From positions 1 through 42,812 of the forward strand of contig CALSCP010000538.1 in the NCBI GenBank assembly GCA_943704425.1: a stretch of DNA of 42,812 nucleotides, read 5' to 3'. The DNA is from Ministeria vibrans ATCC 50519. Its lineage: Eukaryota > Protista > Filasterea. The position numbers and the translations under genes are program-made. The notes below the pieces were generated by a model. That model had not been told where the DNA came from and made no database searches. It saw only the letters and a list, made by a program, of their open reading frames with translations. Shown here one piece after another: positions 3,550 to 42,699 of the stretch; position 1 is the stretch's first letter; every line of letters starts with the position of its first letter.

Positions 3550-4002
3550 CTTGGAATCACTTACAACGCACGCTCTAGCTTACTGAAGGAAGAAAAATAT
3601 TATAAATGAATAGAACATTATTTGCTTCCGTCATGACTAGACTTTATTCTCTCTATCACATAACACATTATCACATCGATTATTATATTTTTACCTCTTG
3701 CACTCACATTGCCCCAGTGCATCTCTAAAGTCCAGACTCTCTAAAGTCTAGTGCCACGAGCCAAGTCAGGTGCGTGACCCGATCAATTTGTCGCAGTTGT
3801 GGTCTGCCACTCAGACTCAAAAGACAAAAAAATAGGATTTCGCACAGCCTACGTCGAATACACGCTTCATTGACTGCCTCGAGTGTATCGCTTCATTGCA
3901 TCACATCATACCTTGCATACCCTACCCTTTTGACGCGCGTATGTCCTCATCGTTTCACTCTGCTTCTCAGCGATCACCCGAAAAAAAAAAAAAAAAAAAA
4001 AA

Positions 4003-4012
4003 NNNNNNNNNN
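4003..4012. other. Assembly gap (10 N) after a poly-A tract
   Basis: N run. Confidence 0.99.
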
Positions 4013-4272: not shown

Positions 4273-7200
4273 ATGGCCCGCCAGCACTCGTCCATGTACA
4301 GATTACATGCCATCGGACTGGTCTTGGCGCTTCTCTCTCTCCTCGTCGGTACAAATTGTTAAAAGAGAAAAAAAAATCCAAATCTCTCTGTTTCATTGAC
4401 ATGCTTGCTGCACGCGTTTGACCCTTTCCGCTCATACGTCCGCTTCATCATATGTATTGCTGCCTGTTTGGCCGTCCGTCTGACCCCCCCTGCCCCTTCT
4501 TCCCCCTTCTATCGACGTCGCTTTGTCCCTTCGACCTGTCTCACCCGTCAATCTGTGTCTGTTTTTCGTTCACTTTTTTTTGCCTTCAGGATCGGTACAA
4601 GCTCAGTCCAATGTGGGCACCAGCTTTGTTGTCGTCTTCATGTCAAATCGAATGACCAACGAACCGGTAAATAGGCACATTGAGTTCACATACAATATAA
4701 TTACATGCAACTCGACTGAACGTCATCATTATATTGTTTTTGCATATGTCATGGCTCCTATGAAATTTCTTAGTCTGGTTCGATTGAACTGGTCGTTGAT
4801 GCACTCCAGGCCACTGCGACGGTCCAAGTGAGCGCTCCCGGCGTGACACCAACACCTTTCATCACGACCGTTGCCGTCACCAAAGGCACAAACACCCGCG
4901 TGCAGCTACCACTGGCTTCACTCATGCTTTCGAGTTCAGGCTCCTCGCGCGAAAACAAGGCCATTTTTGTGACGAGTAGCGAGCCAGTCAGTGTATTTGC
5001 CTACAGTCTCAAGGAACAGAGTAGCTCTGGCATGCTCGTCTTGCCAACAACTCAGCTCGCCACCGACTATGCCATTTCGTCGTATCCCACGCGCAACTCG
5101 GGCACGGAAAGCACCACGTCGCGCGCCGCCATTGTCGCACTCGAGGACAACAGCGTCTTCTCTGTAGACGTCACCAACGCGGGCACCGTCTTCTTTGACA
5201 ACACTGTCCTTGCGGGTAGTGTTCCGCAAAATTTCACGCTCAACCGCGGCCAAGTCGTTCAAATGCGTCCGCTTACCGTCAGTCCAGGTGACCTCTCCAG
5301 CGTACACATCCACGCCTACACCAGCCCGGTGGCCGTCTTCTCGGGTCACGATTGTGCTTGGGTGCCCACCGATCGTGACCACTGCGATGCGCTTGCCGAA
5401 CAGCTGCCCCCTCAGCGCACGTTTGGTCGCTCCTTTGTGACCGGCCCATTTATTTCGGCATCCCTTCAGCCAGCCGTTTACCGCGTGTACGCATCCGCAG
5501 TTGCCTCAGTCGTCTCCTTTTTTGACAGCGCCTCCGACAGCACCCTCTCTCAAACCGTGGCGCCGTTGAACTACGTCGAATTTACCGCCTCGTCCGCAAG
5601 CACCTCCTTTGTACACATCAGTGCCACCAACCCGGTCATGGTTGCACAATACATGGAAGGCAGTGGACTGGCTGCGGAAGTCGCCCAGGGTGATCCCGCC
5701 ATGACCATCGTGCCGCCTGTCGAGCAATTCCTCAACGATTACCGCTTTGCCACGCCTCGCTCGTCCACCATTGCACCGCTGCCTGAGCTCACCATGGCCG
5801 TCAACGTGGCCGTGCCCACCGCACACACTGCCAGTGTGCGTCTCAATGGTGCCGTCGTGGACGCCTCCAACTTCACGGCAGTCGGTACGTCGGGCTATGC
5901 CGTCGCTCAGTTGCGTGTGCCCGCCAACACGGCCAACCTGCTCACCTCCAATCCGCTCAATGTGCCCCTCGGCGCCATTGTGTACGGTTGGGGCAACCAG
6001 GTCGCCTTTGCACACCCCGCCGGCCAGCGCCTCATCGATCTCACAGCAACATGTGTCCCCACAACGGGCATGCCGCGTGACGGTGTCGACAACGACTGTG
6101 ATGGCCGTGTCGACGAGGAAATCCTCAACGGCATCGACGACGACCTTGACGGCACAATCGACGAAGATCTCGCCGCCGAACCGCCCGTCGTCGTGTTTCC
6201 CGCCAACACGTCGCTTGCCGACTGCGCCGCCACTTTGCCTGTCACAACAGGTACTCCGTCGCTGTCGAGCGAGGCAGACGTGTGTGTCGACGCTGGCGGT
6301 GCCACCACCTTTGCCTTTGTTGACTCGTCCGATGCAGCGTGCCCTCACTTCACTTCAATTGTGCGCTCCTGGACCGCCACGGATGGCTGTGGAAATGTCC
6401 TCACGCACGATCAGTATATTACGCCCGAACCTATCGTCATTCTCACGTCGAGCTTGCCCACCGGCACGGTCACCGTCAACGAAAATGCGCCCTACAGCGT
6501 GACCCCGACGCTGGCCACCGGCACCTTGCCTGTACGTTGGTCGCTGGTCACCGCCGCAACGGACATGACCATCGACGCTTCGACGGGCGCCATTACGTGG
6601 AGTGCGGCTGTAGGCAACCAGGGCAGTCCTTACAGCGTGGCCGTCACGGCCACCAACAATGTGACGTCGGACACCGTCAGCTACTCTCTCTCGGTGCGCC
6701 TTATCCCCGTCATTACCAACATCACGGCCCCTCAAGCTGCCTTGCCCACCGCTGCTTTTTCCCTGCCGCTCACCCTCGAAGCAGGCACGCTTCCGGTCAG
6801 CTGGTCTCTCGTCGCTCCTTTTCCCGCCGGCATGACCATCACCACAGGTGGCGTCGTCCAGTGGCCCGCGCCCACGCTCAGCAACTCTCCCCACACCGTC
6901 ATTGCCGAGGCGTCCAATTCGGCAGGGAGCGACACCATGGAATTCGTTATCGAAGTTGGTCATGTGCCTGTCTTTGACGAGTCCTCCACGCCCTTCCCCT
7001 CCATCACCATAGCCGCCGGTGTGCCCTACAGTCAAGCGTTGCCTCTCAGCCAAGGCACCGCACCTATCACGTGGTTGCTTCTTGCGGGCCCCACCGGTGC
7101 CTTTCTCAACTCCTCTACAGGCGTGTTTACTTGGGATGCACCGACGCTCTCTGGCTCGCCTCACTCAGTCAGCGTTTCAGCAACAAACGACGCCGATAGC

Positions 7201-10200
7201 GACAGCGCGTCCTTTTCCATCAACGTGCTCACTCTGCCTTTCATCGACCAGGGTGTACTGCCACCCTCCGTCATCCTTGCCGCAGTTCCCTTTACGTTTA
7301 GCCCCAGCCTGATTGCTGGCACGCAGCCCGTCAGCTGGGCTCTTGATGCCACCTCGGCACCCCTTGAAATGAGCATCGACAGCGCCACTGGCGAGCTCAG
7401 CTGGCCGTCGCCCACCAACGCAAATCTCACGCTTCTTTTGACTGCATCCAACCTTGTGGGACAAGACTCCCTTGTGGTACCTCTGCTTGTACAAACCGCA
7501 CCCGCAATTGACTCCGCATCGCTGCCATCGCCCTCGGTCACCGTCCCCGCCCAAACAGCAGTCTCATACATGCCGACTCTCTTGATGGGCTCCCTGCCTG
7601 TCACTTGGTCACTCGCTAGCGCGCCCCAAGGCATGACCATCAACGCTGTGTCCGGTACAATTGACTGGTCGTCACCAACCAGCTCAGGTTCGCCCCACAA
7701 CGTGACGGTTGTCGTTGCCAATGCAATTGCCAGTGCACATTCGTCTTTCAACATTGTCGTGAACGAAATGCCTATTATTGACTCCACATCAGTGCTCGCC
7801 ATCGCCGCTGTTCAAGTCGGCAATGCCTTCTCCATGACTCCGATTGTCTCCGACGGCACACCGCCCATCAGCTGGTCACTCTCCGGTGCGCCCGCCGGCA
7901 TGACCATTGACTCGGCAACGGCGGAAATCCAATGGACACCCACCACCGCACAGGGCGANNNNNNNNNNNNNNNNNNNNNNNNNNNNNNNNNNNNNNNNNN
8001 NNNNNNNNNNNNNNNNNNNNNNNNNNNNNNNNNNNNNNNNNNNNNNNNNNNATTGTCTCCGACGGCACACCGCCCATCAGCTGGTCACTCTCCGGTGCGC
8101 CCGCCGGCATGACCATTGACTCGGCAACGGCGGAAATCCAATGGACACCCACCACCGCACAGGGCGACACGTCCGCCGTGGTCACCATCACGGCGACCAG
8201 CTCCGTTGGTTTCGACACTGCCTCCTTCACGGCGGCCGCCTACTTCCCACCGCTCCTCGATCGTGCCTCGTTCCCTTCCAGCCCCGTTCAGCTGCTCGCA
8301 GGCCAGTCCTTTGCACTCCAGCCAACCGTCCTCAATGGTTCTCAGCCGCTCACGTGGTCTCTCACGACCGCGCCCACCGGCATGACCATCAACTCTGTGT
8401 CGGGTGCCATTGCGTGGTCCGACACGCAAAATGCCAGTAGCTACACGGTGACGGTGAGCCTTGCGAACCTGGTTAACTCGGACGCGGTGTCTTTCACCAT
8501 CGACGTGCTCGACGCACCTGTCATTGACACCGCCTCGCTGCCCACGTCTGCTGTCAACGTCGAAACCGACGCCGCGTATAGCCTTCAGCTGGGTGTAGAG
8601 CGCGGCAGCACCCCCATCACATGGACCATCGACGCGGCTGGACAACCCACCAGCATGACCATTGGCACCACGTCGGGTCTGCTCGAATGGACACCGGCGA
8701 CGTCTCTTGATGCCGGTCAGACATACACAGTCACTATCAATGCCGCCAATGCCGTCGCAAGCGACTCGTTCACGCTCACCCTCAATGTCTTTGATGCGCC
8801 CCTCCTCAACGCGAGTTCGTTGCCTCCCAATGTCACAGACATTGCGTTTGCCTCCTCCTTTCAGGCGTCTCCTTCGCTCGCGTCGGGAACCCCTCCCTTC
8901 TCGTGGTCCCTCAGCGTGGCGCCCGCCGGCATGACTATCCACACTCTGACTGGCGCCATTTCCTGGCTCAACGCGAACAGTTCCGGCGCCAACACCGTGA
9001 CGGTTCTTGTGCAAAATCCTGCCGCGTCCAACGCGCTCACTTTCACTCTTAATGTTCTTGCGGTGCCGACCATCAATATCATCTCCGTCGTGTCGCTGGC
9101 TAGCGTCGAGATCCTTCAGTCGTTCTCCATGACTCCTTCCATCTCCGACGGCACACCGCCCATCAGCTGGTCACTCTCCGGTGCGCCCGCCGGCATGACC
9201 ATTGACTCGGCAACGGCGGAAATCCAATGGACACCCACCACCGCACAGGGCGACACGTCCGCCGTGGTCACCATCACGGCGACCAACTCCGTTGGTTTCG
9301 ACACTGCCTCCTTCACGGCGGCCGCCTACTTCCCACCGCTCCTCGATCGTGCCTCGTTCCCTTCCAGCCCCGTTCAGCTGCTCGCAGGCCAGTCCTTTGC
9401 ACTCCAGCCAACCGTCCTCAATGGTTCTCAGCCGCTCACGTGGTCTCTCACGACCGCGCCCACCGGCATGACCATCAACTCTGTGTCGGGTGCCATTGCG
9501 TGGTCCGACACGCAAAATGCCAGTAGCTACACGGTGACGGTGAGCCTTGCGAATCTGGTTAACTCGGACGCGGTGTCTTTCACCATCGACGTGCTCGACG
9601 CACCTGTCATTGACACCGCCTCGCTGCCCTCGTCCACTGTTGATGTACAAGTCGGCGTCACCTACTCCCTGCAACTCGCCACCTCATCGGGTAGCTCGCC
9701 CATCACGTGGAGGTTTTTACAGGGGGATCGTGACAACATGACGCTGGATGCGACTTCGGGTCTGCTCGAGTGGACACCCTCGCCGTCGCAGGCGGACATC
9801 CTGGTCACTGTGGTCTTTGGCGCGGAGAATCCCGTCGCACTTGCCACCTCCTTTGTCACCATTCGCGTGTTTGCCGCTCCCATCATCGACGCTGTCTCTC
9901 TCGAGGTGCTCTATGTTGCCCAGCACACACCGCTCGTGGCACAGGCCACCCTCGCACAAGGCACGACGCCCGTCACCTACAACCTGACGTCGGGTCCGAC
10001 GGGCATGACTGTGGACGCAAGCACAGGCGAGATTTTGTGGAATAACACAGCCGTCGTGGGCGACTATGCTGCCGTCATCTCCGTGACCAACTCGGTCGCG
10101 TCATCGTCTCTTTCTTTCACAGTGCGCGTCCTCGAGGCGGTGCACATCGATCGCCGTGGCTCCAGCGAGCACAACTTTGTCTTCTACTTTGCCACCCCCA

Positions 10201-13200
10201 ATCTCGAATTTCGTCTGCTCATTGGTGCCGACCAGGGCTCGGAGCCTATGAACTGGTCACTCGAACGTGCTCCAACCAACATGACCATCAACAGCACGAC
10301 AGGCGAACTCGCGTGGGTGCCGCAGACGAGCGACCTCTTTGTCAACTACGAAGTTGCCATGCTTCTGACCAACCCGGTCAGCAGCAACAGTCGTTCCATC
10401 ATTGTGGCTGTGCGCGAACCGCCCGAACTCGAAGCGGACACGCCCGCCGCCAATCTCACTGTCGAACGCGGTCAGCTTTTCACAGCGACTCTCGTTGCCA
10501 CGCTCGCCACACAATTCACTGGCGTTGACTATGAGTTCTCGCTGCCCATTTCCCTGCCCAACATGACGGTGGACGCCACGTCGGGAGTCATTGAATGGCC
10601 CAACACCAATGTCGAGGGCGTCTTTACGTTTACAGGACGCGTCTCGTCGCTCCTTGGTCACAACGATCGTGTCTTCAGCCTCGTCGTTGCCGAGACACCT
10701 CGCTTTGTTGCCATTCCCTCCTCCATTGCCAGTGCAATCGACGAGCCCTTTTCGCTGCAGCTCGAGCTTTCCAGCGGCTCGCCTCCCTTCCGCCAGGTGC
10801 TTGACGAAGCTCCCACAGGCATGACCCTCTCCGAAACAGGTCTCCTTCAGTGGCTTTCGCCCCACGACATTGGATCGCCGTTCACCGTGCGCGTGTCCAT
10901 CTCCAATGCGGTCGGTGGCGACCAGATCACAACCTCCCTCTCGATTCAGTCGCGCGTCGCCATCTCGTCTTTGGGCGTGCCCACAAACGCCATTCAATCA
11001 GGATCGCCTTACACCCTCCAGTTTGCACTATCTTCAGGAACTCCACCCGTTGCTTGGTCTCTCCTACAAGGACCCCCTGGTGCCCTGCTTGCCTCCGATA
11101 CAGGCTTGCTTGTATGGACCGTTCCCAGCGGTGTGGATTCTCCGTACAACGTCACTTTGTCCGCTACCAATGACGTTTCGTCCGCCACCCTCTCCTTCCT
11201 CTTGACCGTGCTCGATCCGCCGGCCATTGATCCCGACAGTGTCCCCTCCGCCGCCATCCAGGTGACGCCCGGATCAAGCGTCTCGCTCTCACCCGCTCTG
11301 CTCACCGGCACCAGTGTAACCTGGTCCCTTGCCAACACCCCACCGTTCGGTGTGCAAATTGATGTCAACACCGGCGCCGTCCAATGGCTCTCGGCGACAC
11401 GCGCTGGTTCGCCGCACGTACTCACCATTGTTGCAAGCAATGGCATTGGCACTGACTCGGTGGTGGTCGTCGTCGAAGTGCGCCTCGCACCTGTCATTGC
11501 GGGTATCCCTGACACAACAGTGCACCTCTACGAGAACTTTCCGCACGTCCATCACCTGGGGCTTGTCACCGGTGGTGTCGCCTCGTGGTCTCTGGATGCC
11601 GGTGCCCCCGCTGGCCTCACCATTGTTAACAACACAGGCTTGCTTAGCTGGCCCGCCCCGCAACTCGAGTCAAACGGTGAGCCGTATACCGTGTCGGTGA
11701 CTGCAAGCAACGCCGTCGGCAGCGACACGCAATCGTTCAACATTGTGGTGGAGACACCACCATCGCTCAACAATGGCGCCTCGACCCCTGACATGTCCGG
11801 CACTACCTTTTATGTGGTCTTTAGCGAGAACCACGGCAATGTGGGCGACCTCTACGTGCTTGTTGCAGCTCAAGAGGGCACCGACGCCACTGTCACCGTC
11901 ACCATGGCCAGCCAGAGCTTTTCCACCCAGGTGACCGCGTCTGCCTTGGGCACTCCCGTGCGCGTTGACCTGCCCAGTCAGGCTCGCGCCTCAACAGCCT
12001 CGATCGTGTCTGCCGGTGTTCACATTGCGTCTGACACGCGCATCAGCGTGGTGGCTTTCGACACAGCTTCGAGCAATGGCAATCTCTTTGCTGGCAGCTT
12101 TGCAGTGTTGCCCAGCGACGTGCTTGGCACAGATTACCGTGTTATGGCGTACGGCGCAACGGACGCCGCCGATGGAGCACGCAGTCAATTTACCGTCATG
12201 GCGACGCAAGATAACACCACTGTGACCGTTGTGCCTCCTTCGAACGAGCTTCTCTTCATCAACAGCCAGGTGGTCTTTGGGACCATGACAGTCACGCTCA
12301 ATGCCTTCGAGACCATTGCGGCCACAGCGGTGCTTGCCAGTCCCGGCGATGTCACCGGCTCTATCATCTTCGCCGATCGACCGCTGGTGGTCGTGGGAGG
12401 GCACCAATGTGCACAAGTGCCCCGAGACAAGTCAGCGTGTAACCTTCTCGCACAGCAGATTCCTCCGATCCGCACGTGGGGCACCGAGGTAGTCACGCAG
12501 GCGTTTTCCGGCACGCAAACGGGCGGCGATATGGTCCGTGTGCTCACCGCAAGTGCCACCTCCAGTACACAGGTGTCGTACTCCATCAACGGTGCCACAC
12601 CCGTCGTCGTGTCCGTCATTGGCTTTGTGCAATTTGCCTTGCCTGCCGATGCGACGCTCTGGGTTGGAGAAACGTCGTCTCCTCGCGAAGGCATTCTGGT
12701 TGCTCAGTTTGCTCAGTCAGCAAGCGTGACTGTGCCCACCAACACAGTGGGTGCGCCGGTGATGGCACTGGTGCCGCCCGTCGAGCAATGGGGTGCGCTC
12801 GTGTCCATTGCCTTGCCTCAGTGGACGGGCGCCAGCGAAGCTCTTTTGGTGTACAGTCGTACGGCCGCTCGCTCGGGCGTCCTCGTCAACAACACTGCCG
12901 TTTCCGGCTGGACCACAGTCGGCACCTCCGACTACTCAGTTGCTCACGTGTCGCTTGCATCGGCCACTGGCGCGCGTCGCGTCACGGTGCGCAACAGCCA
13001 GCTGAACAACGGTGTGGGCGTGGTTGCGTACGGACTGGGAAATCTCGTTGCCTATGGCTACTCGGCCGGCTTCCGTCTCTCGCCTGTGCGCTCGGCTTGC
13101 GTCATGAGTGCCGGCTCGCCCGAAGATGGTCTCGACAATGACTGCGATGGACGCATTGACGAAGAGATTGCCAATGGCATTGACGACGACAACGACGGTC

Positions 13201-16200
13201 GCATCGACGAAGATCTCGTGGCCAGTGCTCTCGTGGTCACACGCGCTGTCAACGACACTCTCCTTGCCTGCTCTCTTGTGAACGCCACCAGCAATCTACA
13301 GCCCTCCATTGTGGCCGTGTCCAGTCTGTGTGTGCTTGCGGCGGGGGGTGTGTCTCCCTCGCTGCTTGTCACTCCGTCGACAGTGCCGCCCAACACCGCC
13401 TGTGCTGCCTTTGACTATCATCTTAACAGTTTTGCCGTCGTCGATGGCTGCGGCAATACCTTTGCCGATCAGCAATTCCTCTTCCCTGCCGAGCCCATCA
13501 TTGACACGAACACCCTACCTGCGTCGTTGGTCACCCTCAACGAAGGTGACGCCTTCACAGCACTCCCATTGCTCGTGCAAGGGACCGCTCCCACACTGTG
13601 GACGCTCACAAACTCGCCCGCTGACATGGCCATCGACGCCGAGACAGGTGCGCTCGCATGGACGCCAGCCTCACCCATTGGCTCGCCCCACACCGTCGAG
13701 GTCAACGTCGCCAACGACGCCGGATCCGACACGTTCACCTTTGTCATTGTGGTGCGTGCCATTCCTGTCTTTGTGGCCGTTGCCTCACCTCGTCCCACCA
13801 TTCCCGCCGTCACCCCCACCTTTGGTCTGAGCCTCTCTCTCGTGCGCGGATTCCAGCCGGTCAACTACACCCTTGACACGGCGCCCGCCGGCATGACTAT
13901 CGATCGTGTCCTCGGCGAAGTGGTCTGGACCTCTCCCACGCAAGTCGGCTCGCCACACACCGTCACGGCACGCGCCACCAATTCGCTCGGTTCCGACACG
14001 GTCACCTTTTTGTTGCCCGTCCAGGTGGCTCCCACCATCGACGTCACAGGCGTGTCTGACCCCATTTATATTGCACTCGGCTCGCCTTGGACGTTCCAGC
14101 TGAGCGCAGGCAGCGGCACCGCTCCACTGAGCTGGTTCATCCTCAGTGGTGCTCCTGCTGGAATGACTATTAACAATGCCACCGGCAGGCTGTCGTGGCC
14201 GACGCCTGCGACGCAACCCGTTACACCATTTGCCGTGACCGTCTCCGTGGGTAACGACGCTGCAGCCGCTACCATTGCGCTTAATCTTGCCGTGGAGCAA
14301 CCACCCATCATCGACACCGACGGCCTTCCTGCCACCCCGGTTGCCGCTGGCGTCCCCTTCACTCTGGCAACAAACACAAGCACAGGAGACGCTCCGCTCG
14401 CGTGGACCCTCCTTGCTGGTCCTGCCGGCATGACCGCCAGTCCTTCGTCGGGCGAAGTCAGTTGGCCATCGCCCACGTCCGCTGGCTCGCCCCATATGGT
14501 GCTGCTCAATGTCCGCAATCGTGTTGGCGCGAGCAATGTGAGCTTCTCGCTTGTGGTCCACGACCGGCCCACTGTCGATCTCAGTTCGGTGCCGTCTCCG
14601 TCTGCAACCGCCACTGCTGGCGATTCTTACGAATTGCAGTTGAGCGCGTCGGGTGGCACCGCTCCTTTGGTGTGGTCTCTTCTGACAGGTCCACCAGGCA
14701 TGACCATCAATGCGACGAGCGGTCTTCTGACCTTGCCGGTTGCCACATCGACCGGCTCGCCTTACACGGTCGAAGTGTCGCTCACCAATGACGTTGGTAT
14801 CACGCCCATCTCATTTGGTCTCGTTGTGCTCGACTCACTTTCTGTCAGTCCTCCCGCGGAACTCGCGTCAACCTCTTTGCTGCAGCTGCTTGAAGGCAAC
14901 GCGCTCTCGCTGGCCTTTGGCGTGGGCAGTGGCTCGGGTACGCTCACTTGGAGTGTCTCCAGCGACGCACCAGGGCTCACCATTGACTCGTCATCCGGTC
15001 TTTTAAGCTGGCCCAGTGCGGTCGCCTCCGCCACCGCCTACACGACCACAGTGACAGTGGTCAATGCCGTGAGCAACGAGTCGTTTTCGTTTTCGATGGA
15101 GGTGTTCACTCAGGTGCGCATCAACTCGCTGTCTTTGCCCACTTCTGGTGTTGCCATTCGTTCCGCCACCCAACTGCACTTCTTTGCGACAACCACGTCA
15201 GGCACGGGTACCATCACTTGGTCTCTTGCCTCGGCGCCCTCAGGCATGACCATTAGTGGCAGCACTGGCGAGACCACTTGGCCCGTGCCACTCTCGTCGG
15301 CCGGCACCCCCTACAACGTCACGTTTGTCGCGACCAACCCTGTCTCAAGTGACATCGTCGAAATTGCCCTGCTGGTTCACGACGTGCCCACCATCTCGAC
15401 AGGGCCCGCCGACACTTCCATTGCAACAGGTTCGACGCTGACCCTCTCGCTCGTTACATCATCAGGCTCATCGCCACTTGCCTGGTCTCTTGAGAGCGCC
15501 CCTGCCGGCATGGTCGTCGTTGAGGCAACCGGAGCGCTTTTGTGGCCGACTGCATCGACAGCCGGCTCGCCACACACGGTACGAGCAGTCGTGCGCAACG
15601 ACGTGGGCAATGCTACCACGTCGTTTGTCGTCACAGTGCTCGACTCGGTGGTCTTCGACTCGTCGAGCATCACCGGCCTGACCGCATTCGAGCGATTCCC
15701 TCTGCGCGTCCAAGCGGCTACCTCGGCCGGCACTGGTACATTCACCTGGTCCCTGTCGGGCGCTCCCTCGGGCATGACCATTGACGCCACGACGGGTCTC
15801 ATCGAGTGGCTTGATCCACGCCTTGCCTCGACACCTTATACGTTTACGGTGGGCATTGCCAACGACGTGTCTTCCGACTCGGCCGATGGCGACGTCCTTG
15901 TGACCGACTCGCCGCCGTTGAGTGCTACCGAGGGCGTTCTCGACAATGTTGGCGATGCGTTCCTCGTGGCCTTTATGCCCAACCGTAATGACGGCCAGAC
16001 GAGTGCCACAGACGCACTTGTGCTCGACCTCGGTGCGTTCGGAGTCGACGTCCAAGTGAACGTCACCTCGGCGGACGGCCAGCTGCTGGTGCCAACGCAG
16101 CAGGTACTTGCCGGCTCGCTCACGAGCGTGACGGTACCATCGTCGGGACGTATGAGCGAGGGTGTTCTCGAGAGTAAGGGTATTCTTGTCTCCACCAGTT

Positions 16201-19200
16201 CCCCAGTATCGTTGGCGATGCTCAACACAAAGACGGACTCGAGCGACGGGTCGCTTGTGTCGCCCTCGGATACGCTGGGATTCGAGTACTACGTGGTCGC
16301 GTGGCCCGGCAAAGCGGCCTCATCGTTCAAGAGTATGTTTGGCGTGGTGGCCCTCGACGACGACACCACCATTGCAATTCATTCGCCCGTCGAGCTGGTC
16401 ATCGACGGTGTAGTCGTGGCGCCCTTCACGACGACCACCGTGGACATGGAGTCGTTGAAAACACTAAGTGTGGTCGCACAAAACGCATCCGACGACGTGA
16501 CGGGCACTCGCATCAATGCCAATCGACCGGTCGCCGTCTATGGTGGTCACGAGTGCGCGTCGGTTCCCTTGTCGGCGGCAACATGTAGCCATTTGGTTGA
16601 GCAGCTGCCACCCACCACAACCTGGGGCAAAAACTTCTATGCGGCAACCGCCACAGCCATCGCCGACTACCCGACAACACTGCGCATCTTCGCCTCAAGC
16701 AACGACACGACACTCACAGTGTGGGACAGTAGCGCGACGCCGTCGGTCACGCTCACAACAACCCTCGCTGCAGGCGAGGTTGTTGACTACACACCCACCT
16801 CGGGTGATGCCGATGTCCACATATCCACATCCAACCCTGTCCTCGTAGCCCAATTCCTGTCTTCACCCGAGGCTGTGCTCTCCGGCACAAGTACGTCCAC
16901 TGGCGGAGCATCAATGCTCGTTGTGACTCCGCACGAACAGGGTCTCAACCGCGTATCTCTTCCGGCGTTTGGTTCGTTTGGCACGGCCACTGTCGCCACA
17001 GTGTTTGTGGCGACGTCGCGCACTGACGGTATTCTTGTGAACAATGCCGCAGTTGCCACCAACCTGTGGACTCCAGTGGGAGCGCTGGGCACCGTGTCGG
17101 TTGCTCGGGTGCCCGTCACTCCTGGTGCAACAGTACAGGTGTCGCACTCGACGGTGACCGTTCCCTTGTCCGTGTCCCTCTACGGTCTCGACAGCGCCCA
17201 AAGCTATTTCGAGTCGCTTGGCAGTCGCTTTGCGCCGATTGCGAGTGTATGCACCACCAACAGTGCGAGCGCACCGGCCAACGGCCTTGATGACGACTGT
17301 GACGGACGCATTGACGAAGAACTCTTCAATGGACTTGACGACGATGGGGACGGTCGCATCGACGAGGACCTTGCCATTGAGCCGCTGTCCGTCTCGATGC
17401 TTGCCAACGGTACCATTGACGACTGCAATGCCACGCCACAGGGACCCGTTGTCACCAGTGAAGCGACCTTGTGTGTTTTCGTCGGAGGCATCTCGCTGGT
17501 CAACTACACCGATACGTACGAGCCACAGGGCAGCACTTGTCTAACTGCGTCGCGCATTGTGCGCACCTGGACAGTCACCGACGGTTGTGGCAACACTCGC
17601 ACGCAGCAGCAAGTTCTCGACGCGGCGAGCCCTGGCTTTGATCCGGCCAGCGTGCCCTCGCCGAGCGCCTCTGTCGACGAGGCGGGCACGTACACATTGC
17701 AGCCGACGGTGCGCGGCACGGAGCCTTTTTCATGGTCGCTTGGGGCGTCGGCGCCAGCAGGCATGACCATTGACAGCGCGACGGGTGCGATCGAGTGGAC
17801 GGGTGCCACCACGGACGGATCACCCTACAATGTGACTCTCATTGTGTCCAACGTGCATGGCACTGCCACTGCCTCCTTCCAGCTGATTGTACGTGCGGCC
17901 CCCGTCATTGACAGTACAAGCGTGCCTTCGCCATCGCTCACCGTTGCCACTGGCAAGAGTGTTGTGCTGCAACCCGCAGTCAGCGCTGGATTCCAGCCCG
18001 TCTCGTGGTCTCTGACAGCGCACCCGGCAGGCATGACCATTGACAGCTCAACGGGTGCTATTGCGTACGGCAGTGCCTCCTCCAGTGGCTCGCCCTACGC
18101 CGTCACGATTGTTGTGGGCAACTCGGTCTCAAGCGACTCCCTCTCCTTTGTCCTCTTTGTCCTTGACCCGCCCCAAATCTCGTCAAACGGCATTCCGGCA
18201 CCTCAGGCAATCGTCTCGTCGGCCACCGAGTACACACTCACGCCACAGCTGACGGCCGGCACCGGAACACTCGTATGGTCGCTGCCCAGCCGTCCCTCAG
18301 GCATGCGTGTCGACTCGGGCACCGGGGTGGTCACTTGGCCCACGCCAACGGCCACTGCTGTGGCGCACAATGTGACTCTGGCGGTTACGAATGGAATCGA
18401 CTCGGACTCGGTGAGTTTCCAGCTGCTTGTGCTTCAGGTGCCCCTTGTCGACCTCACGAGCCTCCCCTACCCAAACGCCTCCATTGCCGCGGAAGCAGTC
18501 TACTCGGTCACGCCCGCCCTAACGACGGGCACCGGCTCGCTCACGTGGGCTCTCAATGTTGCTCCTAACGGCATGACTATCAATCCAAGCACGGGCACGC
18601 TCGAGTGGCCCTCGCCCACGACTGTCAATTCGCCACACACCGTTGATCTTACCGTCACCAACGAGGTGGGCTCGCAATCCATTTCGTTTGCACTCATTGT
18701 CGTCACGACACCGTCGGTCGACACCTCCTCGGTCGATCCCAACCTTCCGCCCGTGTCGTCTGCCAACTCGTTCACCTACGATCCCGACGTGGCCGTCGGC
18801 GGTACGGGACCGTTTACCTACTCGCTGCCGCCCGGCTCGGGAGCCGCGTCAGGCGGTCTCACAATTCATCCGACAACGGGTGTGCTGTCGTGGTCGTCGC
18901 CCTCTGCCGTGGGCTCACCCCACAACATCACGGTGGTTGTCAGCAATGCGGTAGGCGCCGACTCCTTTGCCGTGTACATCACGGTGCTCGATCCTCCCGT
19001 GCTCGACACCACGACACTTCCTGACGTGAACGACACCGTCATCGTGGGCGTCGCCTACTCGCTGCAACCGCAACTAAGCAGCGGCACGGGCAACATCACA
19101 TGGCAGCTGCCCGACCACCCGGCCGGCATGATTATCGATCCACTCACAGGCATGGTCAACTGGACCAACCCCCAGGCGGCCGTGGTGGGCCGTCGTCGTA

Positions 19201-20585
19201 CCGTGGGCACCTCCTCACCCTACACGACGACGATTGCGGCTGTAAATGCCGTCGGCAACTCGTCGCACACTTTCTTGCTTGTCGTCTCGACCTCGGATCC
19301 TTCGCTTGGCGGTCAGGGGCTCAATGACTCGGGACTCGCCTGGTGGATTTGGCTGCTTATTGCGTTGCTCCTACTGCTGCTGTTGCTTCTGCTGATCTGT
19401 TGCTGCTGCTGTGGTAGGCGCCGTCGACGCGACAAGGACGCACTCTCCAAGTATCGCCCTCAAATGGAAGAGCGCTCCAACATGATTGAGCTGCAGGAAA
19501 ACCCCATGAAAATGAGTGCACTCAGCGAAGCCGAAGAGCGCCGTCGTATGGCGTCCGAAGAAGAGGATCGCCGTCGCCGTGAGCAGGAGCAGCAAGACCG
19601 CGAGGAGGCGCTTCGTCAGGTAGAGCTCGAGCGAGCCCGACGCACCGAAGAGGAGCGTCGACGTGCGCGTCAGGCCGAGCTGGATGCGGAAGCAGAGCGA
19701 GAGCGTCGCGAGGCCGAGGCGCGCGAACGCGAGGAAGAAATTTGGCGCCGAAAGCAAGAGGAAGAGAGACTACGAGCGGCGCGTGAACGAGAGGCGCGTC
19801 GTCGCGATGAAGAGTCGGCCGAAGTAGAACGAGCGCGAGAGCGTGCGTTGGAGGAGCAGCGAGCGCGTGAAGAGGAGGAGCGGCGACGCAAGCGCATTGC
19901 CATGTTTGGTGCATTGGGTGACGATGCCTTTGAGTTGTTTGGCGAGCCTGTCGGTCATGTGCGCTCCAAGCAGCAGATGGTGGCGTCGGTTGAGCGCGAA
20001 GGAGGAATAGTGTTGAAGCGTGACAATGTGATGGAGGACCGGCGTGCGGTGCTCGACGACTCCCTTGAATTTGTCGACTCGACGCGAGCATCAGCAAGCA
20101 GGACTGCCACTGAGCGCACCACGACCTCTCTCCAAGGCATGTCACAAAGTAGTTTGGACACATTGCATCGCCGTGAAGAGCCAGCCGGAACGCCCACGGG
20201 CAAAGCCACCGTCGACGAAGACGACCCCAATTTTGGCTATGTCGAAACCTCTCGCGAGCCCACCTACGCATATGGGAACGGCGAGTCGGCACGTGCACAA
20301 GTCATGTCGCCACCCCGTGCTCGCAAACCCATTGGCTCCGTCTACGACGACGACGACGACGAGGAACGCGACCATGTTGACCTCGATTATGTTTCTGGCG
20401 CCCCGCCAGCGTCTCACCCTACCGCTGGCAAGCGTCGCGTAAGCTTTGACAGTGACTATGGCGTGGATGCTGGCTCTAGGCAAGACCAGTCGTCCCACAA
20501 CGCCGCTCCTCCGTCGACTGCCTCCGACTTTGTGTTCCACTTCAACGAAGACGGAGAAACGCAGCTCGAAGATGAAATGTTTTAA
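4273..20585 (+). CDS. Giant type-I membrane protein, ~5,250 aa if the gap overlap is merged. Signal peptide; 3x [IgGFc-binding domain + paired DGxDxDxDGxxDE motifs + HYR-like domain + He_PIG/cadherin-like array of 19, 9 and 6 repeats]; TM; Cys5; E/R-rich helix; Tyr-containing tail. Exons 4273-4348, 4590-4666, 4774-20585.
   Basis: ATG4273 gives MARQHSSMYRLHAIGLVLALLSLLV (signal-like), and splice phases join in frame to the long ORFs. IgGFc-binding hallmarks occur three times (G-x-x-F-x-V-x-F-x-x-N; V-x-x-G-H-x-C-A; EQLPP/QQIPP-x-x-T-[WF]-G). Repeats W-x-L-x-x-aP-x-GMTId-x-x-tG-x-x-x-W were counted by eye. [21 protein letters not shown] at 19341-19397. Confidence 0.85.
7959..8051. other. Assembly gap (93 N) with duplicated flanks
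   Basis: 7843-7958 is repeated exactly starting at 8052. Confidence 0.97.
8056..9629 (+). repeat. Near-identical ~488-bp intragenic direct repeat (8056-8543 vs 9142-9629; period 1086 bp)
   Basis: Direct comparison shows only two visible substitutions (ACCAGC/ACCAAC and AACCTG/AATCTG). Confidence 0.92.
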
Positions 20586-21573: not shown

Positions 21574-24500
21574 CCAAATGTAAAACTTCGCGGATTCAAA
21601 AAGGTGTTTTGCTTCATGCTGCATGGTTCGCCAGACTTGACGAGCCGCGATGTGCGGTGGCAGTGCGAGCAGGCGGAAGCAAAGCAGCGTCTTGACGACA
21701 CTCAAGGACCCAACCTACTCAACGTGGTGGTCTTCGAGGAAGCTGACGCGACCGAGAACAAGGACTCGCTCAAGGTACATTGATATTAATAATCATCCTT
21801 TTTATGCTGGGACCGAGGCATTCAGTTTTGGACGAGACGCAAAAAAAAAACCTTAATGATTTTGTTGTTGTTGTTGTTGTTGTTGGGTGTGTTTTTCTTC
21901 TTTTTACAGGTGTTTCATTACTTTCATGACGAGCGACGCGTGGGCTCGCTCCAGCTGATGAACAATCCACAAGACGTGGCACAGAGCAACCGCATGTTGA
22001 TGGTGTTTCGCGGCAAGCCGTGTGTGTCCGACCTGCAAGATTTGGCCCTCGAGTCAATCAAACTGAGTGTGGGTCAGTCCATTTCGCCCAGGAATCAGCT
22101 GCAGCTCGAGAACTTTTGCCGTGCGTACAGCCATCTCATTGACACGCATCGATGGTTCGCCGAGACCTTTGGTTTGCGCGACTTTTATCACTTGATTCGC
22201 TTTTTGCGACGCAAGTGCCAGAGCAAGGAGCGCATCCTGAGCATCACACCCAACATGCTGATTATGGCACTGTTGCGAAACTTCAACTGTGAGCCGGATC
22301 ACTTCCGCGTGATTGTCGAGTGCTTCCTGGTCAACTCGAAGGTGCCCCTCTCGACCGCCGAGAAGTTTTTCGAGCCGGTTTTCAGTGTGTTCAAGAGTGC
22401 GCTCACCGACTACCATCGCGAAGGGGGCAACCTCAACGACACGTCGGTGCGTCCCAAGCTGCTCATTGACCGCACGCACGACGATGGCGCGTTGCGATTG
22501 CTTGACGCAGTGGGTGTGCTCCCACGCGACGATGTGGACGTCTTTGAGTTGAGCATGTTCACTGGAAGTCGCACCGAGGTGGATCGGATCCAGCTGATCA
22601 CGCGCATTGTTGCAGCCATGGAGCACGGGCGCACCATTGTCATGGTGAACACACAGGCCATCCACGCGTCCTTCTTTGATCTGTTCAACCAACACTATAC
22701 GACTACCGTCTTTGGCAGCAAGGAGGTCTTTTTTGCCACCATTCCCGTGGGCACCACCATTCGCTACTATCCTGTGCACCCCAAGTTTCAATGTATTGTG
22801 CACATGCGCGAGTCCGAGTTGCACGCGTGTCCCAAGGCCTTCCGCGATCGCTTTGAGAAGTACACGGTGGACATTCGCAGTGCGCTCGAGTACGCATGCA
22901 ACATGGCTCACACGAGCGCGCGCAAGACCATCCAGTGGCACAGTGAGCGCTTGCACAACCTTGTTGACGAACTTGCCGACTCGTGTGTGGCTGTTGATGA
23001 CGATCGACTGCGCGAGACGGCCGATGCGCTTGTGCTGGATTCGATTGCGTTTGAGACACTGCACAGTGCTGCTGCTGTTGCTGCTGCTCCTGCTGCTTCT
23101 TCTTCTTATTCTTCTTCTTCTGCTGCCGACCAAGGTGTGGCCGCTGCTGCCGATGTCAACAGTACAGCCACCTTCCAAGAAGTGCGCCTGTCGCCTGCAA
23201 CGTGGTTTTCACAGCGAGCCCACGCAGGCGATGAGGACGTGTTTGTCGAGTGCAGCCAGACGGTGACCGACGCGGGTGCACATTGTGAACCAGCTCGCTC
23301 CGCCTCCGCCGCCCTGGCACACGACTTTTTGCACTACCACAGTACACACGAGCGCAACATGGTGCACCTGGCATCGCGTTTGTTGCAGACGGTACCGTCC
23401 GAGATGGTTCTTGTGAATGCGGGACTGCTCAAGAATTACCTCGCCGACTACTTTGATTCCATGGGGCATTTGGACATTTCCCAGATGGTGCGTGTCGTAC
23501 GCGAGCGTGCACACGATGCGGACGTGCACGGCGAGGCACACAAGTACCTTGTTGTTGCGACATCGAATACGGCGTTGCTGCAGCTGCCTCACGGCGCCGA
23601 CGAACATTTTGACTGCACGACGACACATGTGCGCTCGCTCACCGAGTTCCGCACTCAAATTGCCTTTGAGACACATTTGCGCGCTCATTTGGCGGACACG
23701 AACGACTCGCGCACCTTTGTACTTGCACTGAACATGAGTGAGGTGTCGCCAATGCTGCTGAATCATGCGCGACGCATTGTCGAGCAAGAGACGAAGAACG
23801 CCGCCCGTCGCTTGGCAGGTGCGTCCGACTTGCAAAGTCCCATCAAGACGGTCGTGTTGTTGTGTCATTTCCGAGCGGGTTCGCAGTTGCGCTCGCGTTA
23901 CTCTCTCAACTCGGCCGGCGGCTGGGAAACAGTTGTGGTCGACTGTTCGAGCATGACCACCCGATTTCCAATTGCTCGCTTTGCGCAACACGTTTTGCTG
24001 GGCGATTCACCGCAACTCGAGCCATTTGCGCCTCGTCGCGCAAGCACCCTCGCCGTCGTGCGTCACTTGTATTTCTCGCGCACATTGCCAGCGGCGCAAC
24101 GCGCGAGCGTCATCGACGAGCTCCTGGAGCGCATGCCGGGTCTTCATCGAGCAATGAATGAGCGCATGGAAGAAGCATTCCCGCTCACATTGCAACGTGA
24201 GCTGCTCCAGCGGTGTGCAGCCAAGCTGGCAAGTGGCGAAACGGTTGAGTCCATCGGTGAGCAGGTGGCGCACTTTTTTGATCGAGCGGTGGTGTTGACG
24301 GCAGCGACGGTTCTTCGTTTTGTTATGGGCCCACGCGCGGGTGCACGCGGGGCAGGGTTGCTGGAGCGACTGGACGAAGGCCAACACACCGTGGAAGGCA
24401 TGCTTGCCTTTGCTGAGGTTGTTGTACGCTCGCAACCGTTTCCCGACGTGCTCGAGCTAATGCTGCGCTCTGAGGAGCCCACCATGAGCGATCCGGTTGC

Positions 24501-27500
24501 CACGTCGGCGGCCCGAACGTACGTGTCGCTTCCGCTAAGCCAGCATGTGATCCGGCGCATTGAGGGAAGTGTGCAGCAGTGGAAGATGCAGTCGGATGCG
24601 GTGCTGAGTGCGCGTGGGTTGTTTGAGAGTGTCCAACAGGACGCAGTGGTTGCGCCTGCGTTGGAAGTGCTTGCACGTCATCCAACGTTGTGTTACGCCT
24701 ACGCGCGTGACCTCATTGTGGGCTCGCTGTTTGCCGGTCAGCTGACGGGCGACGTGTCGCAGACGCTGCTCACCTCGGTAGACTTTGTGTTTGAGTGTTT
24801 TCGTGCGATGGTCGATGTGGAGACGGGGGCCGTCGTCAAGGAGGAGAAGAGCATTGCAGCGAGCGTCTGTGACTTGCATGTCGTGTTCGAGCGTAGTCGC
24901 GAGCACCTTATCACACTGCTGCTGACGCTCGAGCCGCTGTGTACCTTCTTTGACGATGTCGCTGTTGCACTCGAGTCATTGTCGACGCATTTGAAAGACT
25001 CGCAGTCCATTACGGGCGTGTGCTGTGATTTCTATCGTTGGGGCTTTGCCCAATTGTGGTCACAAGTTGCGTCGCTCAACTCGAGCGTCCGGCGCACCCT
25101 CTGGATTCATGTTGCCGAGCTTGTCAGTGCCCAGTTGGCTTCGGATGTGGAGCGAGTCGAGTCACTATTGCCCGAGTCGGCTGCCACGCAGCTTGTTTTG
25201 CTGCGTCTGTGCGTTGTGTTATTGCGCTTTACAAGCGCTGACGCAGCGGCCGCCTCGGCCACGGCGCAGTTTGTTGGTGATCACATGGCCGAGACCAGCT
25301 TTCCGGTGCTTTGCCGCGGCTTTGTGACCGCCATTGGCAACAAAGACTTCATTTTGGACGCGGACTCGCGTCGTCGTGCGCTCGAGGCGGCCCTGACCAT
25401 TCTCGTGGATGCTTCATCAATGCTCAGCGAAGTGTTTGTACGCGATCTTCTTGCCACTCTGGACGGATCATCTCAAGTGCGTGCGTGGTCGCTTCTCTCT
25501 GGTGAGCCTCCATTGGTTGATGCCAGGAGTGTTCAGCCTGACAAAGTAGAAGAGGCATCGAAACAGGCAGAAGTTGAGGAAGGAGAGGAGAAGAACAAGG
25601 CGGAGGAGGAGGAGGAGGAGGAGGAGGAGGGGATGGAACTGCCGACAGAAGCAGGCGGGTCTGTGGCAATTCAAATCCGTAGCTCTGTACGAGACTGGTT
25701 GGTGGCGAAACTTGTTGGGGTGGGTGCTGGCGGTGGTCGGGTGGAGGCGTACGCGAAGGAGCTTCACGATGTGGTTGCTTGTGTGTTTACAGCGTCACGA
25801 CAAGCGACGACAAACGACCGGGTCGACGAGTTGTCTCACTTCACGGGCGATCTTGGCATTCCGTTGCTGGACAGTGTGTACACTGTGCAGCGTGATGCGC
25901 TCCTTTCCAACGTCCAGCCGACGTTGCGCAGCCTTGTGGCCGAGACGACAGCATGCGAGCGCACCGAGCGACAGCTGCGTCGCGATGTGCTCTCGCTCGA
26001 CGACGGAGACGATCAGCAGGTTGTGGGCGAGTGGTTGTGCGAGCTTGTTCGCACTGCGGTGCTTCATGACCTTGTTGTGATTGTGGCGGCGCGTGGAGTT
26101 GCCTCGTCGGCAGGCACGTACCTGACGAACACGGATGCAGACCATAGTATTCGCGCTTGTGTTGAACGTGTACTTGCTGAGCGACCGGGTGCAACGCGGC
26201 TGTTTGTCGCGTCGATGCTTGACTGTCTTGGTGGTCACGAGGCATTTGTGGCACACGTGCGCGGTGATGTGCCTCAATGGCCACTCGTGTCGGTGGCCAT
26301 TCGTGACAGTTGCCTGACCGACGTACAGCCTCGCCACGTGCGTGCCTTTGACTTTTCCTTCGTCGATGGCAACGACGAAGCATCGCGAGCACAAGCGCTG
26401 CTCTACACCTCTCTTTGTGAAGCGCTCGCACGCACCGCCTCGAAGCGACAAGCTGACCATGGCGGTGAGCTAGTGTTGCGTGCAGTGGTCGCCGACGAGA
26501 GTGTGAGTGTCCTTGATGCGCGTCGCATCGTCGTGCTGGCGAGCTACCACGCGTGTTTACGTGCGTCTCGTTCGTATGCGGCTGCCAACGTTCTTGTTGA
26601 CGCGCTGCGCGAGCCTCTTCTGCTCACTGCCGTTGAGTGCAAGGTGTTGTTGTGGCTGCTGGACCGCGAGCGATTGCGTGTGATGGCGCCGTACGGACAA
26701 AACCAGCTGGTGGACCTGCTGCTTGACGAGCAGAGTGGAGCGCGCGACGTGACACGGACGGCTATAATCAATGTGTTGGCGACCGTTTTTGGGACGGAGC
26801 CGCGCAGTACACCATTGCATGCAGCTCTGTGGCACGCGCAGGACATGGTGGGCACGTACGGGCTGGGCATGACGAACAACTCGCGCATGGAGACCCTCGG
26901 TCTGGGTCATCGCGGAATTCTGGACTGCTACACCATTCTCAACGAACAGGGGGTGTCGCACCGTCGCTTGACTGGTGTGTCGCAGACTACGCTGCACATC
27001 ATCTACTTCCACCTTTTCGGCATGATGTCGCTGCAGCTGCTTGCGTGTGACGATGCTGAGACGGTGTACACGCGCGAACTGTTCAGTCATCGTGCTACAG
27101 ACGGGGATCCGTCGTATCCCTTGGTGACCGATCCATCAATGCGCTTGCGCAACTTTGTGTGGCAACGTGCGAGTGTCTCGCTGACGCACTTACAGTCGCA
27201 CTTGAGTCTTGATGACGACCAGACGCACGCGCTCAATGTGCGACTGCTTGAACATTTGCGAGACTACTCGCGAACCGATTGTCAGTGCGTTTTTAAGTCG
27301 AGCGAGGCGCGTCGTGCTTATGAGTTGGCGGCGTACGAAAACGTGTTTCAGCGCCTTGTGGCGTCGACGTCGGCACAGGATCTGTTAGACGAGCGGGCGC
27401 GTGCCGAAGAGACGCACGCCGCAGAGTCCATTGCGATTGTGCGGCTGCGTCGCGCAGTGTTCAAGCGAGCGGGTCAGCCGCATCAGCATGTGTTGTCGCT

Positions 27501-40800: not shown

Positions 40801-42589
40801 AGATCAGGCAAAGCAATAAGATAAATGGCAACTTCGGGACGACAGTCGCACTTGCCAAATTCACATCCGCCACCAGGGCACACACTCGAGTCCCCGCACG
40901 GCGCACAGTTTGGATCGCCAGGCGTACACAGCTTGTCAACAATGAATTCAGAGCAGGGGGGCAAGCTCAAATCAAACGTTTCTTCTAGCATGCCCTGCGA
41001 GCCAATGTCGGTGAGCAAGGGCACATCCACCACCTTCAAGTCGGGCAGGTCGAGCAGAGAAAGAAGCGAACCAATGGAGCCGAGCGAGGGGAACACCAGA
41101 TGTGTGATGCCTTGGCATTCGCTAATAAAGACGAGCCCGGTACTGACGAGTGACTCGAGACCCGTCTCGTACGCCGCGTTGGTGCCCAGCTGATGCAGTC
41201 GGAAGAGCACAACCGACTCGACGTTGGTAATCTGACCGGGCAAACGAACGAGCAAGGGCGAGGTGGAGACGCGCAGGCTGCGGGTGACCGAGGCGAGAAA
41301 GCCAAAGGCACCGGGGTGCGACAGAGAGATGCCCTGCTCCGGCCAGGCGGCCGTGGTGACAGGCACAAAACTGACGAGCTGCTCGTTGTTCTCGATGGTC
41401 ATGGACTCGAGTTGGGTGACATAGCGAAAGGCGGCCATGTCCGAGACAAAGTTGGAGTTGTCGGAGAAAACAAAGCGCTTGAGCCAGAGCGTAGGCGAGT
41501 TGAAACCATAGATGCGCTCAAGGCGCTGATTCGCCATGAACGAAACCTCTTCCACTTCACCCAGGGCGTGAAAGCCACGCACTTCAATAAGGTTGGGGTT
41601 GCTCAAAATGCAAATGCGCTCCACCGCTGTAGCGTTGCGGAAGATGTCAACGCTGACGAGGTTGTCGCAATTGGTCACGTTTACATCCCACACTTTGACG
41701 TTGACAACGCCCGGCAGGGGCAGGTAAAGCGATTGGAGCGCGTTGCAGCGATGGAGTTGAAAGCTGGTAATGTTGACAATCCCATCGAGGCCCGACACGT
41801 CGACAAGCATAGGGTTGTCGGCGAGGTGCACTCTTTGTCCGCTGCCGACGATGTTGAAGTCGGCAAGCGACACGAGATTAGGCATGGAGAAGATATTGAT
41901 GCTGGCGGTGCAAATGGAGAAGCCTGAAAAGTCGCCCATGTTCTGCCAGAATGGCAAACCCGTCAGCGTGATGTTATTGTACACCGTAAGATTGGCGCGC
42001 ATCGCAGGCTGCTCGAGCAAGGCGCAATTTTCAAAGCTGACGCCAGCGACAAAGGTCATAGACGTGGGGAAGTTGATGTGGCGCACAATGGGACTGTTTC
42101 GCACCACGAGTGGGCCCATAATGTGGTTGAGGGCGGAAGCATCGTCGAAGATGGTCACCATGCGCGGCGTGTTGTTGTCGATAATCATGCTGCCGAGCAC
42201 CTCAAAAACTTGATTGAAATTGATAAGGGTCGCCAGGTTGGTGCGCTCGACGACAAAGACGACGGGCTCGGGATAGAATCCGTTGTTGAAGGGGTCACCA
42301 ATGCGAACGAGCTGGTCGAAGAAAACGGCATCCTGCAAGTCGGGCAGATCGCGCAGCATCAACTGGTAGGTTACTTCAAACGTGCGCCACTGGCCGGTCG
42401 CATGAATGTGCACCAGCGACGGCAGATCATCGAGGGTAAACGTGCCAAACTTTTGAATGTCACTAAATGAGTCGATGGTGGTCAGTTCGGCCCAATCGCG
42501 GATTTCCACGTTGCTGATCTCATCGTAGGTGTGAAAACAGTTGAGTTCCGATGAGATGCCGTTGTTTGCAATGTACAGCAGAGACGTCA
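37836..42589 (-). CDS. Adhesion GPCR, 5' partial (terminal exon 37836-42589): LRR/receptor-L-like solenoid, Cys-rich EGF-like insert, GAIN/GPS, secretin-like 7TM, long acidic tail
   Basis: GPS CVWWDSTVSLWKTWGCEVV...TTCRCNHL|TSFAVLL (cleavage between 39720 and 39719); seven hydrophobic helices (LEIISYVG, NLCVAIF, FFLMACFCWM, GWGMP, CWI, LGVTWLFG, FNSAQG); Lxx-L/I-x-I-xx-N-xx-L repeats upstream. Acceptor gctag at 42590-42594 follows a (CT)n intron. Confidence 0.9.
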
Positions 42590-42602
42590 CTAGCGAAAGT
42601 AG

Positions 42603-42605
<3 letters not shown>

Positions 42606-42696
<91 letters not shown>
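42606..42696. repeat. (GA)n microsatellite in the adhesion GPCR intron
   Basis: Pure dinucleotide run; it produces the spurious (LS)n start of the ORF-track protein. Confidence 0.98.

Positions 42697-42699
<3 letters not shown>

Follow-up and report, generated by a model that had tools for sequence, protein, structure and literature searches.

We analysed a window of 42,812 nucleotides from the filasterean protist Ministeria vibrans ATCC 50519 (positions 1 to 42,812 of contig CALSCP010000538.1, forward strand, assembly GCA_943704425.1). The window is eukaryotic DNA, and positions 4273 to 20585 hold a gene of three exons, two small ones at the 5' end and a third of 15.8 kb, which encodes a predicted giant surface protein of 5,251 aa. 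Its ectodomain consists of three copies of one module, each comprising an IgGFc_binding head, two acidic DxDxDG-type motifs, an immunoglobulin-like (Ig-like) domain resembling HYR_4C, and an array of He_PIG repeats. A first-pass annotation, made from the sequence alone, had described a signal peptide, three such super-modules with arrays of 19, 9, and 6 repeats, one transmembrane segment and a tail of about 390 aa, and this description is confirmed by open reading frame analysis, Pfam, a repeat profile built from the protein itself, and hydropathy. The features of the gene, with the evidence for each, are as follows.

4273-4348 (+), exon 1, with the start codon and the signal peptide (25 residues, then a single base of a Gly codon that the intron splits); sequence read, GT at 4349
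4349-4589 (+), intron 1 (GTACAA...CTTCAG, GT..AG); sequence read
4590-4666 (+), exon 2, with the end of the signal peptide and the first β-strand of head 1; profile alignment of the peptide
4667-4773 (+), intron 2 (GTAAAT...TCTTAG, GT..AG); sequence read
4774-20585 (+), exon 3, a single open frame broken by an N gap alone, with the stop at 20583-20585; open reading frame
5029-5988 (+), head 1, IgGFc_binding (PF17517); E 7.8e-54 (Pfam, protein piece) and E 1.7e-54 (genome match)
6052-6183 (+), acidic pair 1, two DxDxDG-type motifs bracketed by Cys; columns invariant over six modules, PF11617 at 22.8 bits against a cut-off of 27
6181-6438 (+), HYR_4C-like four-cysteine domain 1; alignment, and hhalign at 96.2% to a protein having HYR_4C alone
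6436-11765 (+), He_PIG array 1, 19 repeats if the gap flanks merge; Pfam and self-built repeat profile
7959-8051 (no strand), assembly gap within one He_PIG repeat, 93 N of arbitrary length; flank comparison
8056-8543 (+), near-identical copy of 9142-9629 (2 mismatches) at a spacing of 1,086 nt; sequence comparison
12099-13034 (+), head 2, IgGFc_binding; E 2.1e-48
13098-13226 (+), acidic pair 2; invariant columns, sub-threshold profile scores
13227-13499 (+), HYR_4C-like domain 2; alignment, hhalign
13497-15917 (+), He_PIG array 2, 9 repeats; self-built repeat profile
16245-17183 (+), head 3, IgGFc_binding; E 2.9e-54, AlphaFold2 model of module 3
17250-17381 (+), acidic pair 3; invariant columns, low model confidence
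17382-17636 (+), HYR_4C-like domain 3; PF23237 at E 0.013, hhalign 96.2%, Ig-like structural matches at Z 5.6-5.8
17634-19301 (+), He_PIG array 3, 6 repeats; self-built repeat profile
19335-19412 (+), transmembrane helix ending in five cysteines; hydropathy peak 3.49
19413-20582 (+), cytoplasmic tail of 390 aa, with an Arg stop-transfer run, a juxtamembrane motif, a Glu/Arg-rich stretch, a conserved motif, and an acidic-aromatic C-terminus; BLASTP against the tail of a paralogue

The reading frame opens at the ATG at 4273 with a hydrophobic, signal-like peptide of 25 residues. The 25-residue peptide of exon 2 matches a profile of the five remaining modules of this gene and its paralogue at positions 7-24 (E 2.8e-6); it thus supplies the missing first strand of head 1, and the match supports both splice junctions. 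An exact search of JGI metagenome contigs with the spliced exon 2-exon 3 junction gave zero matches. Bacterial contamination was considered and rejected, given that the gene has two spliceosomal introns and a eukaryotic tail and that its neighbours are eukaryotic too. About 260 bases upstream of the start codon, at 3983-4012, we observe a poly-A run followed by a gap of 10 N, which indicates that the promoter and 5' untranslated region is incompletely assembled.

Domain searches were run on two separate protein pieces, A (4774-7956) and B (8052-20582), whereas a string joined across the gap in array 1 served for residue counting only. PF17517 scores 183.4 bits in piece A and 326.1 bits for the two copies in piece B, against a cut-off of 25.6 bits, and the genomic matches score 168-188 bits. 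He_PIG (PF05345) reaches 85 and 367.5 bits in the two pieces, above its cut-off of 24 bits (E 3.8e-112), so that the IgGFc_binding and He_PIG assignments of the first-pass annotation both stand, the former three times and the latter repeatedly. The He_PIG stretches also match PF24908, the profile of the Ig repeats of Dictyostelium Sib proteins (55.7 bits against a cut-off of 27.8, E 6.8e-15). By the self-built profile there are 34 repeats in all, the 19 of array 1 comprising 18 intact ones, 5 before the gap and 13 after it, and 1 that the gap divides. The reading as one type I membrane protein, with stalks that become shorter nearer the membrane, is supported. Exactly eight cysteines, in equivalent places, occur in each module and none in the stalk repeats. 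Over the whole of 4774-19334, the ectodomain is rich in Ser/Thr/Ala/Val, with 0.2% Lys, 2.1% Arg, and 52 N-glycosylation sequons. No catalytic or toxin domain was found in the Pfam scan of the pieces, and no enzyme or toxin fold in the structural search described below.

The two smaller elements of the module are less easily named. The acidic motifs stay below the curated cut-offs of both PF11617 (Cu-binding_MopE, 18-23 bits against 27) and NF033662 (acidic double-disulfide repeat, 14-18 bits against 41); judged by sequence, they are only relatives of these families, yet real and invariant over six modules. The paired motifs that had been noticed are therefore upheld, whereas membership of Cu-binding_MopE is not. 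Likewise, the HYR-like domain is 85-90 aa long, with four invariant cysteines and an invariant DGCG motif in the six aligned copies, but PF23237 (HYR_4C) reaches at best 16.1 bits (E 0.013) against a cut-off of 27, although it is the top sub-threshold match in three of the six copies. A profile of the six copies aligned with a unit of protein P0007, whose sole Pfam family is PF23237, gives an hhalign probability of 96.2% (E 2.2e-9). The earlier term "HYR-like" is thus correct as a relationship, not as Pfam-level membership.

A single strong hydrophobic segment, terminating in CCCCC and followed by RRRRR, precedes the 390-residue tail. The tail contains the motif MFGAL..DDA.E.FGEP (19902-19949), which is common to the paralogue, and the two tails are related by BLASTP (E 4e-15). 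Between about 19530 and 19898 lies a stretch of some 120 residues of Glu/Arg/Ala repeats, with a similar stretch in the paralogue; it looks like a charged single α-helix or a coiled-coil spacer. NCBIfam matches of this Glu/Arg-rich part, such as TolA, were rejected as low-complexity and compositional. A word search with the cytoplasmic tail gave zero matches. Elsewhere in the genome, a 1,656-codon open frame (C2169:9678-10160) weakly resembles the transmembrane and juxtamembrane section of this tail (29% identity, E 2e-4).

PF17517 has six matches in the genome, three in this gene and three in a gap-free open frame of 5,664 aa on another contig (C2236:43908-63998, minus strand). This paralogue likewise contains three copies of the module, their He_PIG arrays counting 11, 6, and 6 repeats, followed by a transmembrane helix with a cysteine cluster and a tail sharing the juxtamembrane motif, the Glu/Arg-rich stretch, and the conserved motif given above. 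Its N-terminus carries in addition a long array of epidermal growth factor (EGF) repeats (dozens of EGF or teneurin-type EGF repeats) and an RCC1-like stretch. The EGF array runs on into a further EGF-rich open frame of 1,032 codons upstream, in the same frame and with one stop between, possibly the sign of an in-frame intron. Between the two paralogues, all six modules can be aligned over their full length, at 30-38% identity and with 52 invariant columns; eight cysteines in each and the acidic motifs are unchanged throughout. This conservation argues for purifying selection. When 76 heads were placed in a tree, these six came out as one clade with a support of 98 (Shimodaira-Hasegawa-like approximate likelihood ratio test, SH-aLRT), in which the second heads of the two genes pair at 94 (98/97 in a separate tree) and the third heads join at 93. 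This branching pattern fits a triplication of the module before the duplication of the gene. Other giant He_PIG open frames, lacking the IgGFc_binding head, occur at C1954:10189-10482 (4,377 codons), C2159:87425-87658 (3,817 codons), and C1933:22987-23196 (2,700 codons).

The gap in array 1 bears directly on the length of the protein. Its flanks, 7843-7958 and 8052-8167, are identical over 116 bases, and each begins on a codon boundary of the same He_PIG repeat. The four bases 7843-7846 equal 8052-8055, but differ from the third copy at 9138-9141, so that the simplest reading is that of two unmerged contig ends overlapping by 116 nt. The nominal frame passes from frame 1 to frame 0 across the Ns because the length of the gap is arbitrary; with identical flanks in the same codon register, the join is in frame unless whole 1,086-nt units are hidden. 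Extra units of this kind (362 codons, four repeats) are possible and would keep the frame. Merging the flanks gives a protein of 51+1061+4177-38 = 5,251 aa. The near-identity of 8056-8543 and 9142-9629 reflects a duplication or gene conversion of recent date. Since the gap is of unknown length, sits in a repeat almost exactly copied 1,086 nt further on, and nominally changes the frame, the join might also be an artefact of assembly, uniting two genes, or a gene and a fragment, in which case neither the 19-repeat tier nor the 5,251 aa would be real. We give this explanation very little credence: the two flanks share their 116 bases and their codon register, the surroundings of the gap contain neither a stop nor a start signal nor a second signal peptide, and the paralogue holds all three modules in one open frame without a gap, which shows that the architecture itself is not an assembly artefact.

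The structure of module 3 was predicted with AlphaFold2 (573-aa model, alignment of 22 sequences). The model has an all-β head (pLDDT, the predicted local distance difference test, 79.9; pTM, the predicted template modelling score, 0.75) and an acidic linker of low confidence. In a wide structural search, residues 6-119 of the model match the TM1070/ASRT sandwich (Z 10.6, 106 residues aligned), residues 121-212 match cupin-like double-stranded β-helices (Z 6-7.8), residues 233-315 match jelly-roll, GOLD, and carbohydrate-binding-module folds (Z about 6), and residues 486-570 match a PKD domain and Ig-like modules from the adhesin SraP (Z 5.6-5.8). When all 573 residues of the model were submitted to Foldseek, the outcome was uninformative, with low-TM multi-Ig matches only, and module 1 found no sequence match in the Protein Data Bank.

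Searching 1.84 billion cluster representatives with a profile built from the six modules yielded 14,699 proteins at E<=0.001. Identity to either paralogue never exceeds 45% in these matches over a stretch longer than about 45 residues, and no protein among the matches listed iterates the whole module; any relative holding at least two complete modules should have reached a score sufficient for listing, but the library evidently lacks the proteins of this genome itself and covers protists incompletely. Beyond the same-genome paralogue, the iterated module was found in none of the proteins listed; the first-pass annotation likewise remarked that it recognised the architecture from no named family. 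The parts are less exotic than that remark implied, since single units of head, acidic motifs, and HYR occur in a Lingula IgGFc-binding protein, and units of head, acidic motif, and He_PIG in bacterial giants. In short, the thrice-iterated plan of head and stalk on a membrane anchor is a new arrangement, whereas all of its domain families are known. A literature search for He_PIG together with IgGFc returned nothing, and PF17517 appeared in one unrelated mussel paper.

The bacterial giants, which include RHS repeat-associated metagenome proteins (P0002-P0004) and a Sandaracinaceae PKD protein (MBX3275625.1, P0098), have the same head with an acidic motif directly after it and then He_PIG, and in the head tree their heads group with those of this protein. 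They differ in having one unit instead of three, no HYR_4C-like domain detected between acidic motif and stalk, and no eukaryotic transmembrane helix and tail. Many of them end in RHS/YD toxin-delivery shells, which are absent here, with no PF05593 or PF25023 match in this protein and a C-terminus formed by the transmembrane helix and cytoplasmic tail. A further protein from NCBI, P0001 (7,029 aa), combines five IgGFc_binding heads and a few He_PIG repeats with TSP type 3, Dicty_CTDC, RHS, and teneurin YD-shell families, the latter four by precomputed annotation.

Animal IgGFc-binding proteins share the PF17517 head, and the Lingula unit has head, acidic motifs, and HYR_4C-like domain in the same order, but these proteins have a single unit, without He_PIG stalk or membrane anchor. 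After its N-terminal domain, human FCGBP continues with VWD-C8-TIL assemblies that carry GDPH cleavage sites (PMC8267560), whereas Pfam found no VWD, C8, or TIL domain in either piece of this protein, which does not qualify as an FCGBP-type mucus protein. Several heads per polypeptide, as here, are also found by local domain profiles in the axolotl Ambystoma (XP_069460991.1, 17 heads), the newt Lissotriton (XP_078509955.1, 11 heads), and the unicellular holozoan Chromosphaera perkinsii (Nk52_evm54s207, 10 heads). In these giants, the heads are directly adjacent, with no stalk arrays between them, and the Chromosphaera protein has no other Pfam domain.

By analogy of design, the Dictyostelium Sib family is the nearest experimentally studied eukaryotic counterpart. 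Like this protein, with its signal peptide, single transmembrane helix, and PF24908 matches, Sib proteins are type I membrane proteins of an amoeboid protist with bacterial-type Ig repeats, and experiments have shown that they act in adhesion to substrate and particles (PMC9197732). They differ by a VWA domain and two NPxY talin-binding motifs (PMC9197732), neither of which was found here (no Pfam match to VWA in this protein). Conversely, the PF17517 heads present here go unmentioned in that account of Sib, with which the comparison was made by description only.

In the head tree, a starred group of 35 rows contains the six heads as well as heads from bacteria, metagenomes, and Chromosphaera, whereas animal heads form a group of their own. 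Because the tree is unrooted and most neighbours of the six heads are unnamed, we regard a bacterial origin of the module only as possible. A more specific scenario, rather unlikely in our judgement, is that a near-animal lineage gained a bacterial head-acidic-He_PIG module by horizontal transfer, fused it to a signal peptide, anchor, and tail, and triplicated it before the gene was duplicated. If so, these proteins would form a family of multi-tier receptors for prey capture or adhesion that has no counterpart in animals or other protists. The clustering with bacterial and metagenomic rather than animal heads, and the lack of a transcript-derived fragment in our searches, could also point to a silent or decaying relic of bacterial gene transfer. 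We find this very improbable in view of a 15.8-kb frame without a single stop, the spliceosomal introns, the signal peptide, the eukaryotic-style transmembrane helix and tail, and the invariant cysteines and motifs over six modules merely 30-38% identical.

We propose, with a probability of roughly 55%, that this protein is a single-pass type I giant adhesin or receptor of the plasma membrane of a unicellular eukaryote. This reading draws on the signal peptide, the one transmembrane helix, the open 15.8-kb frame, the three PF17517 domains, and the He_PIG repeats, and also on the conservation of the modules, the related tail in the paralogue, the all-β model, the bacterial surface giants, and the match to Sib repeats. 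Both its expression and its surface location are putative. The ectodomain of about 4,800 residues would form a chain of Ig-like He_PIG domains serving as a long stalk, broken at three levels by a globular all-β head of about 440 aa. After each head would come the two acidic motifs, probably calcium-binding, and the HYR_4C-like Ig domain, presumably disulfide-bonded. If each of the 34 Ig-like repeats spans roughly 4 nm, as we estimate from Ig-like domains in general, the ectodomain would extend over some 150-200 nm.

Binding is provisionally assigned to the heads, whose most likely ligands would be glycans or other polymers on the surface of prey bacteria or of the substratum; we infer ligand binding from the fold and context of the heads. 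Three heads per filament might allow multivalent capture at different distances from the membrane, and the tail, with its cysteine cluster, charged helix, and motifs conserved in the paralogue, may link the filament to cytoplasmic partners. The name of the head family misleads: the human IgGFc_binding domain failed to bind IgG (PMC8267560), which makes "IgG Fc binding" a misnomer, and the role of the domain has been stated to be unclear, with its occurrence in gliding bacteria noted (PMC11796319).

Other functions were weighed against the same evidence. The protein could be a structural cell-coat component or spacer, for a thick glycocalyx or the support of filopodia or a stalk, in which the heads serve lateral self-association and not external capture. 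The Ser/Thr/Ala/Val-rich, lysine-poor ectodomain with its many sequons is in keeping with this, as are a head family without known ligand (PMC8267560, PMC11796319) and the tandem chains of 10-17 heads in vertebrates and Chromosphaera, which suggest a polymer or matrix role. Nevertheless, the paralogues conserve the head spacing and the tail motifs, and giants of adhesin-like or toxin-delivery type in bacteria contain the module; both observations favour a receptor over a passive coat, and we consider the cell-coat function a minority possibility. Alternatively, the paralogues might bind each other or themselves, as homophilic or heterophilic cell-cell adhesion molecules in aggregation. Two diverged paralogues of the same plan, one with an extra EGF array, would suit such a role, and unicellular relatives of animals do aggregate, as stated in PMC13366479. 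We judge it improbable, since no sequence feature points to homophilic binding and the Pfam scan of either piece found no cadherin, integrin, or C-type lectin domain.

Several points weigh against the adhesin or receptor function that we prefer. Its support is computational, and the protein searches brought up no fragment of the gene from any transcriptome or assembly. There is no known ligand for any PF17517 domain (PMC8267560). The tail matches no Pfam family at cut-off, and the motif NP.[YF] is absent from the tails of both this protein and its paralogue. Most of the structural matches have a commonplace Z, that to TM1070/ASRT alone being clear of the background, and the repeat number of array 1 is uncertain owing to the gap.

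The finding is one at the level of annotation, and the function proposed from sequence is plausible. The protein and its paralogue would be among the largest predicted surface molecules of M. vibrans, and their building blocks are better known from bacterial adhesins than from animal adhesion proteins. Domains of this type make them a candidate, neither integrin nor cadherin, for the adhesion repertoire of the unicellular relatives of animals. They also offer a tractable test case for the role of the widespread IgGFc_binding domain, and the three-tier layout, with heads at three distances from the membrane, is a testable design.

The gene is flanked in the window by two more very long open frames, one of 2,700 codons at 21856-29958 on the plus strand and one of 1,647 codons at 37836-42779 on the minus strand.

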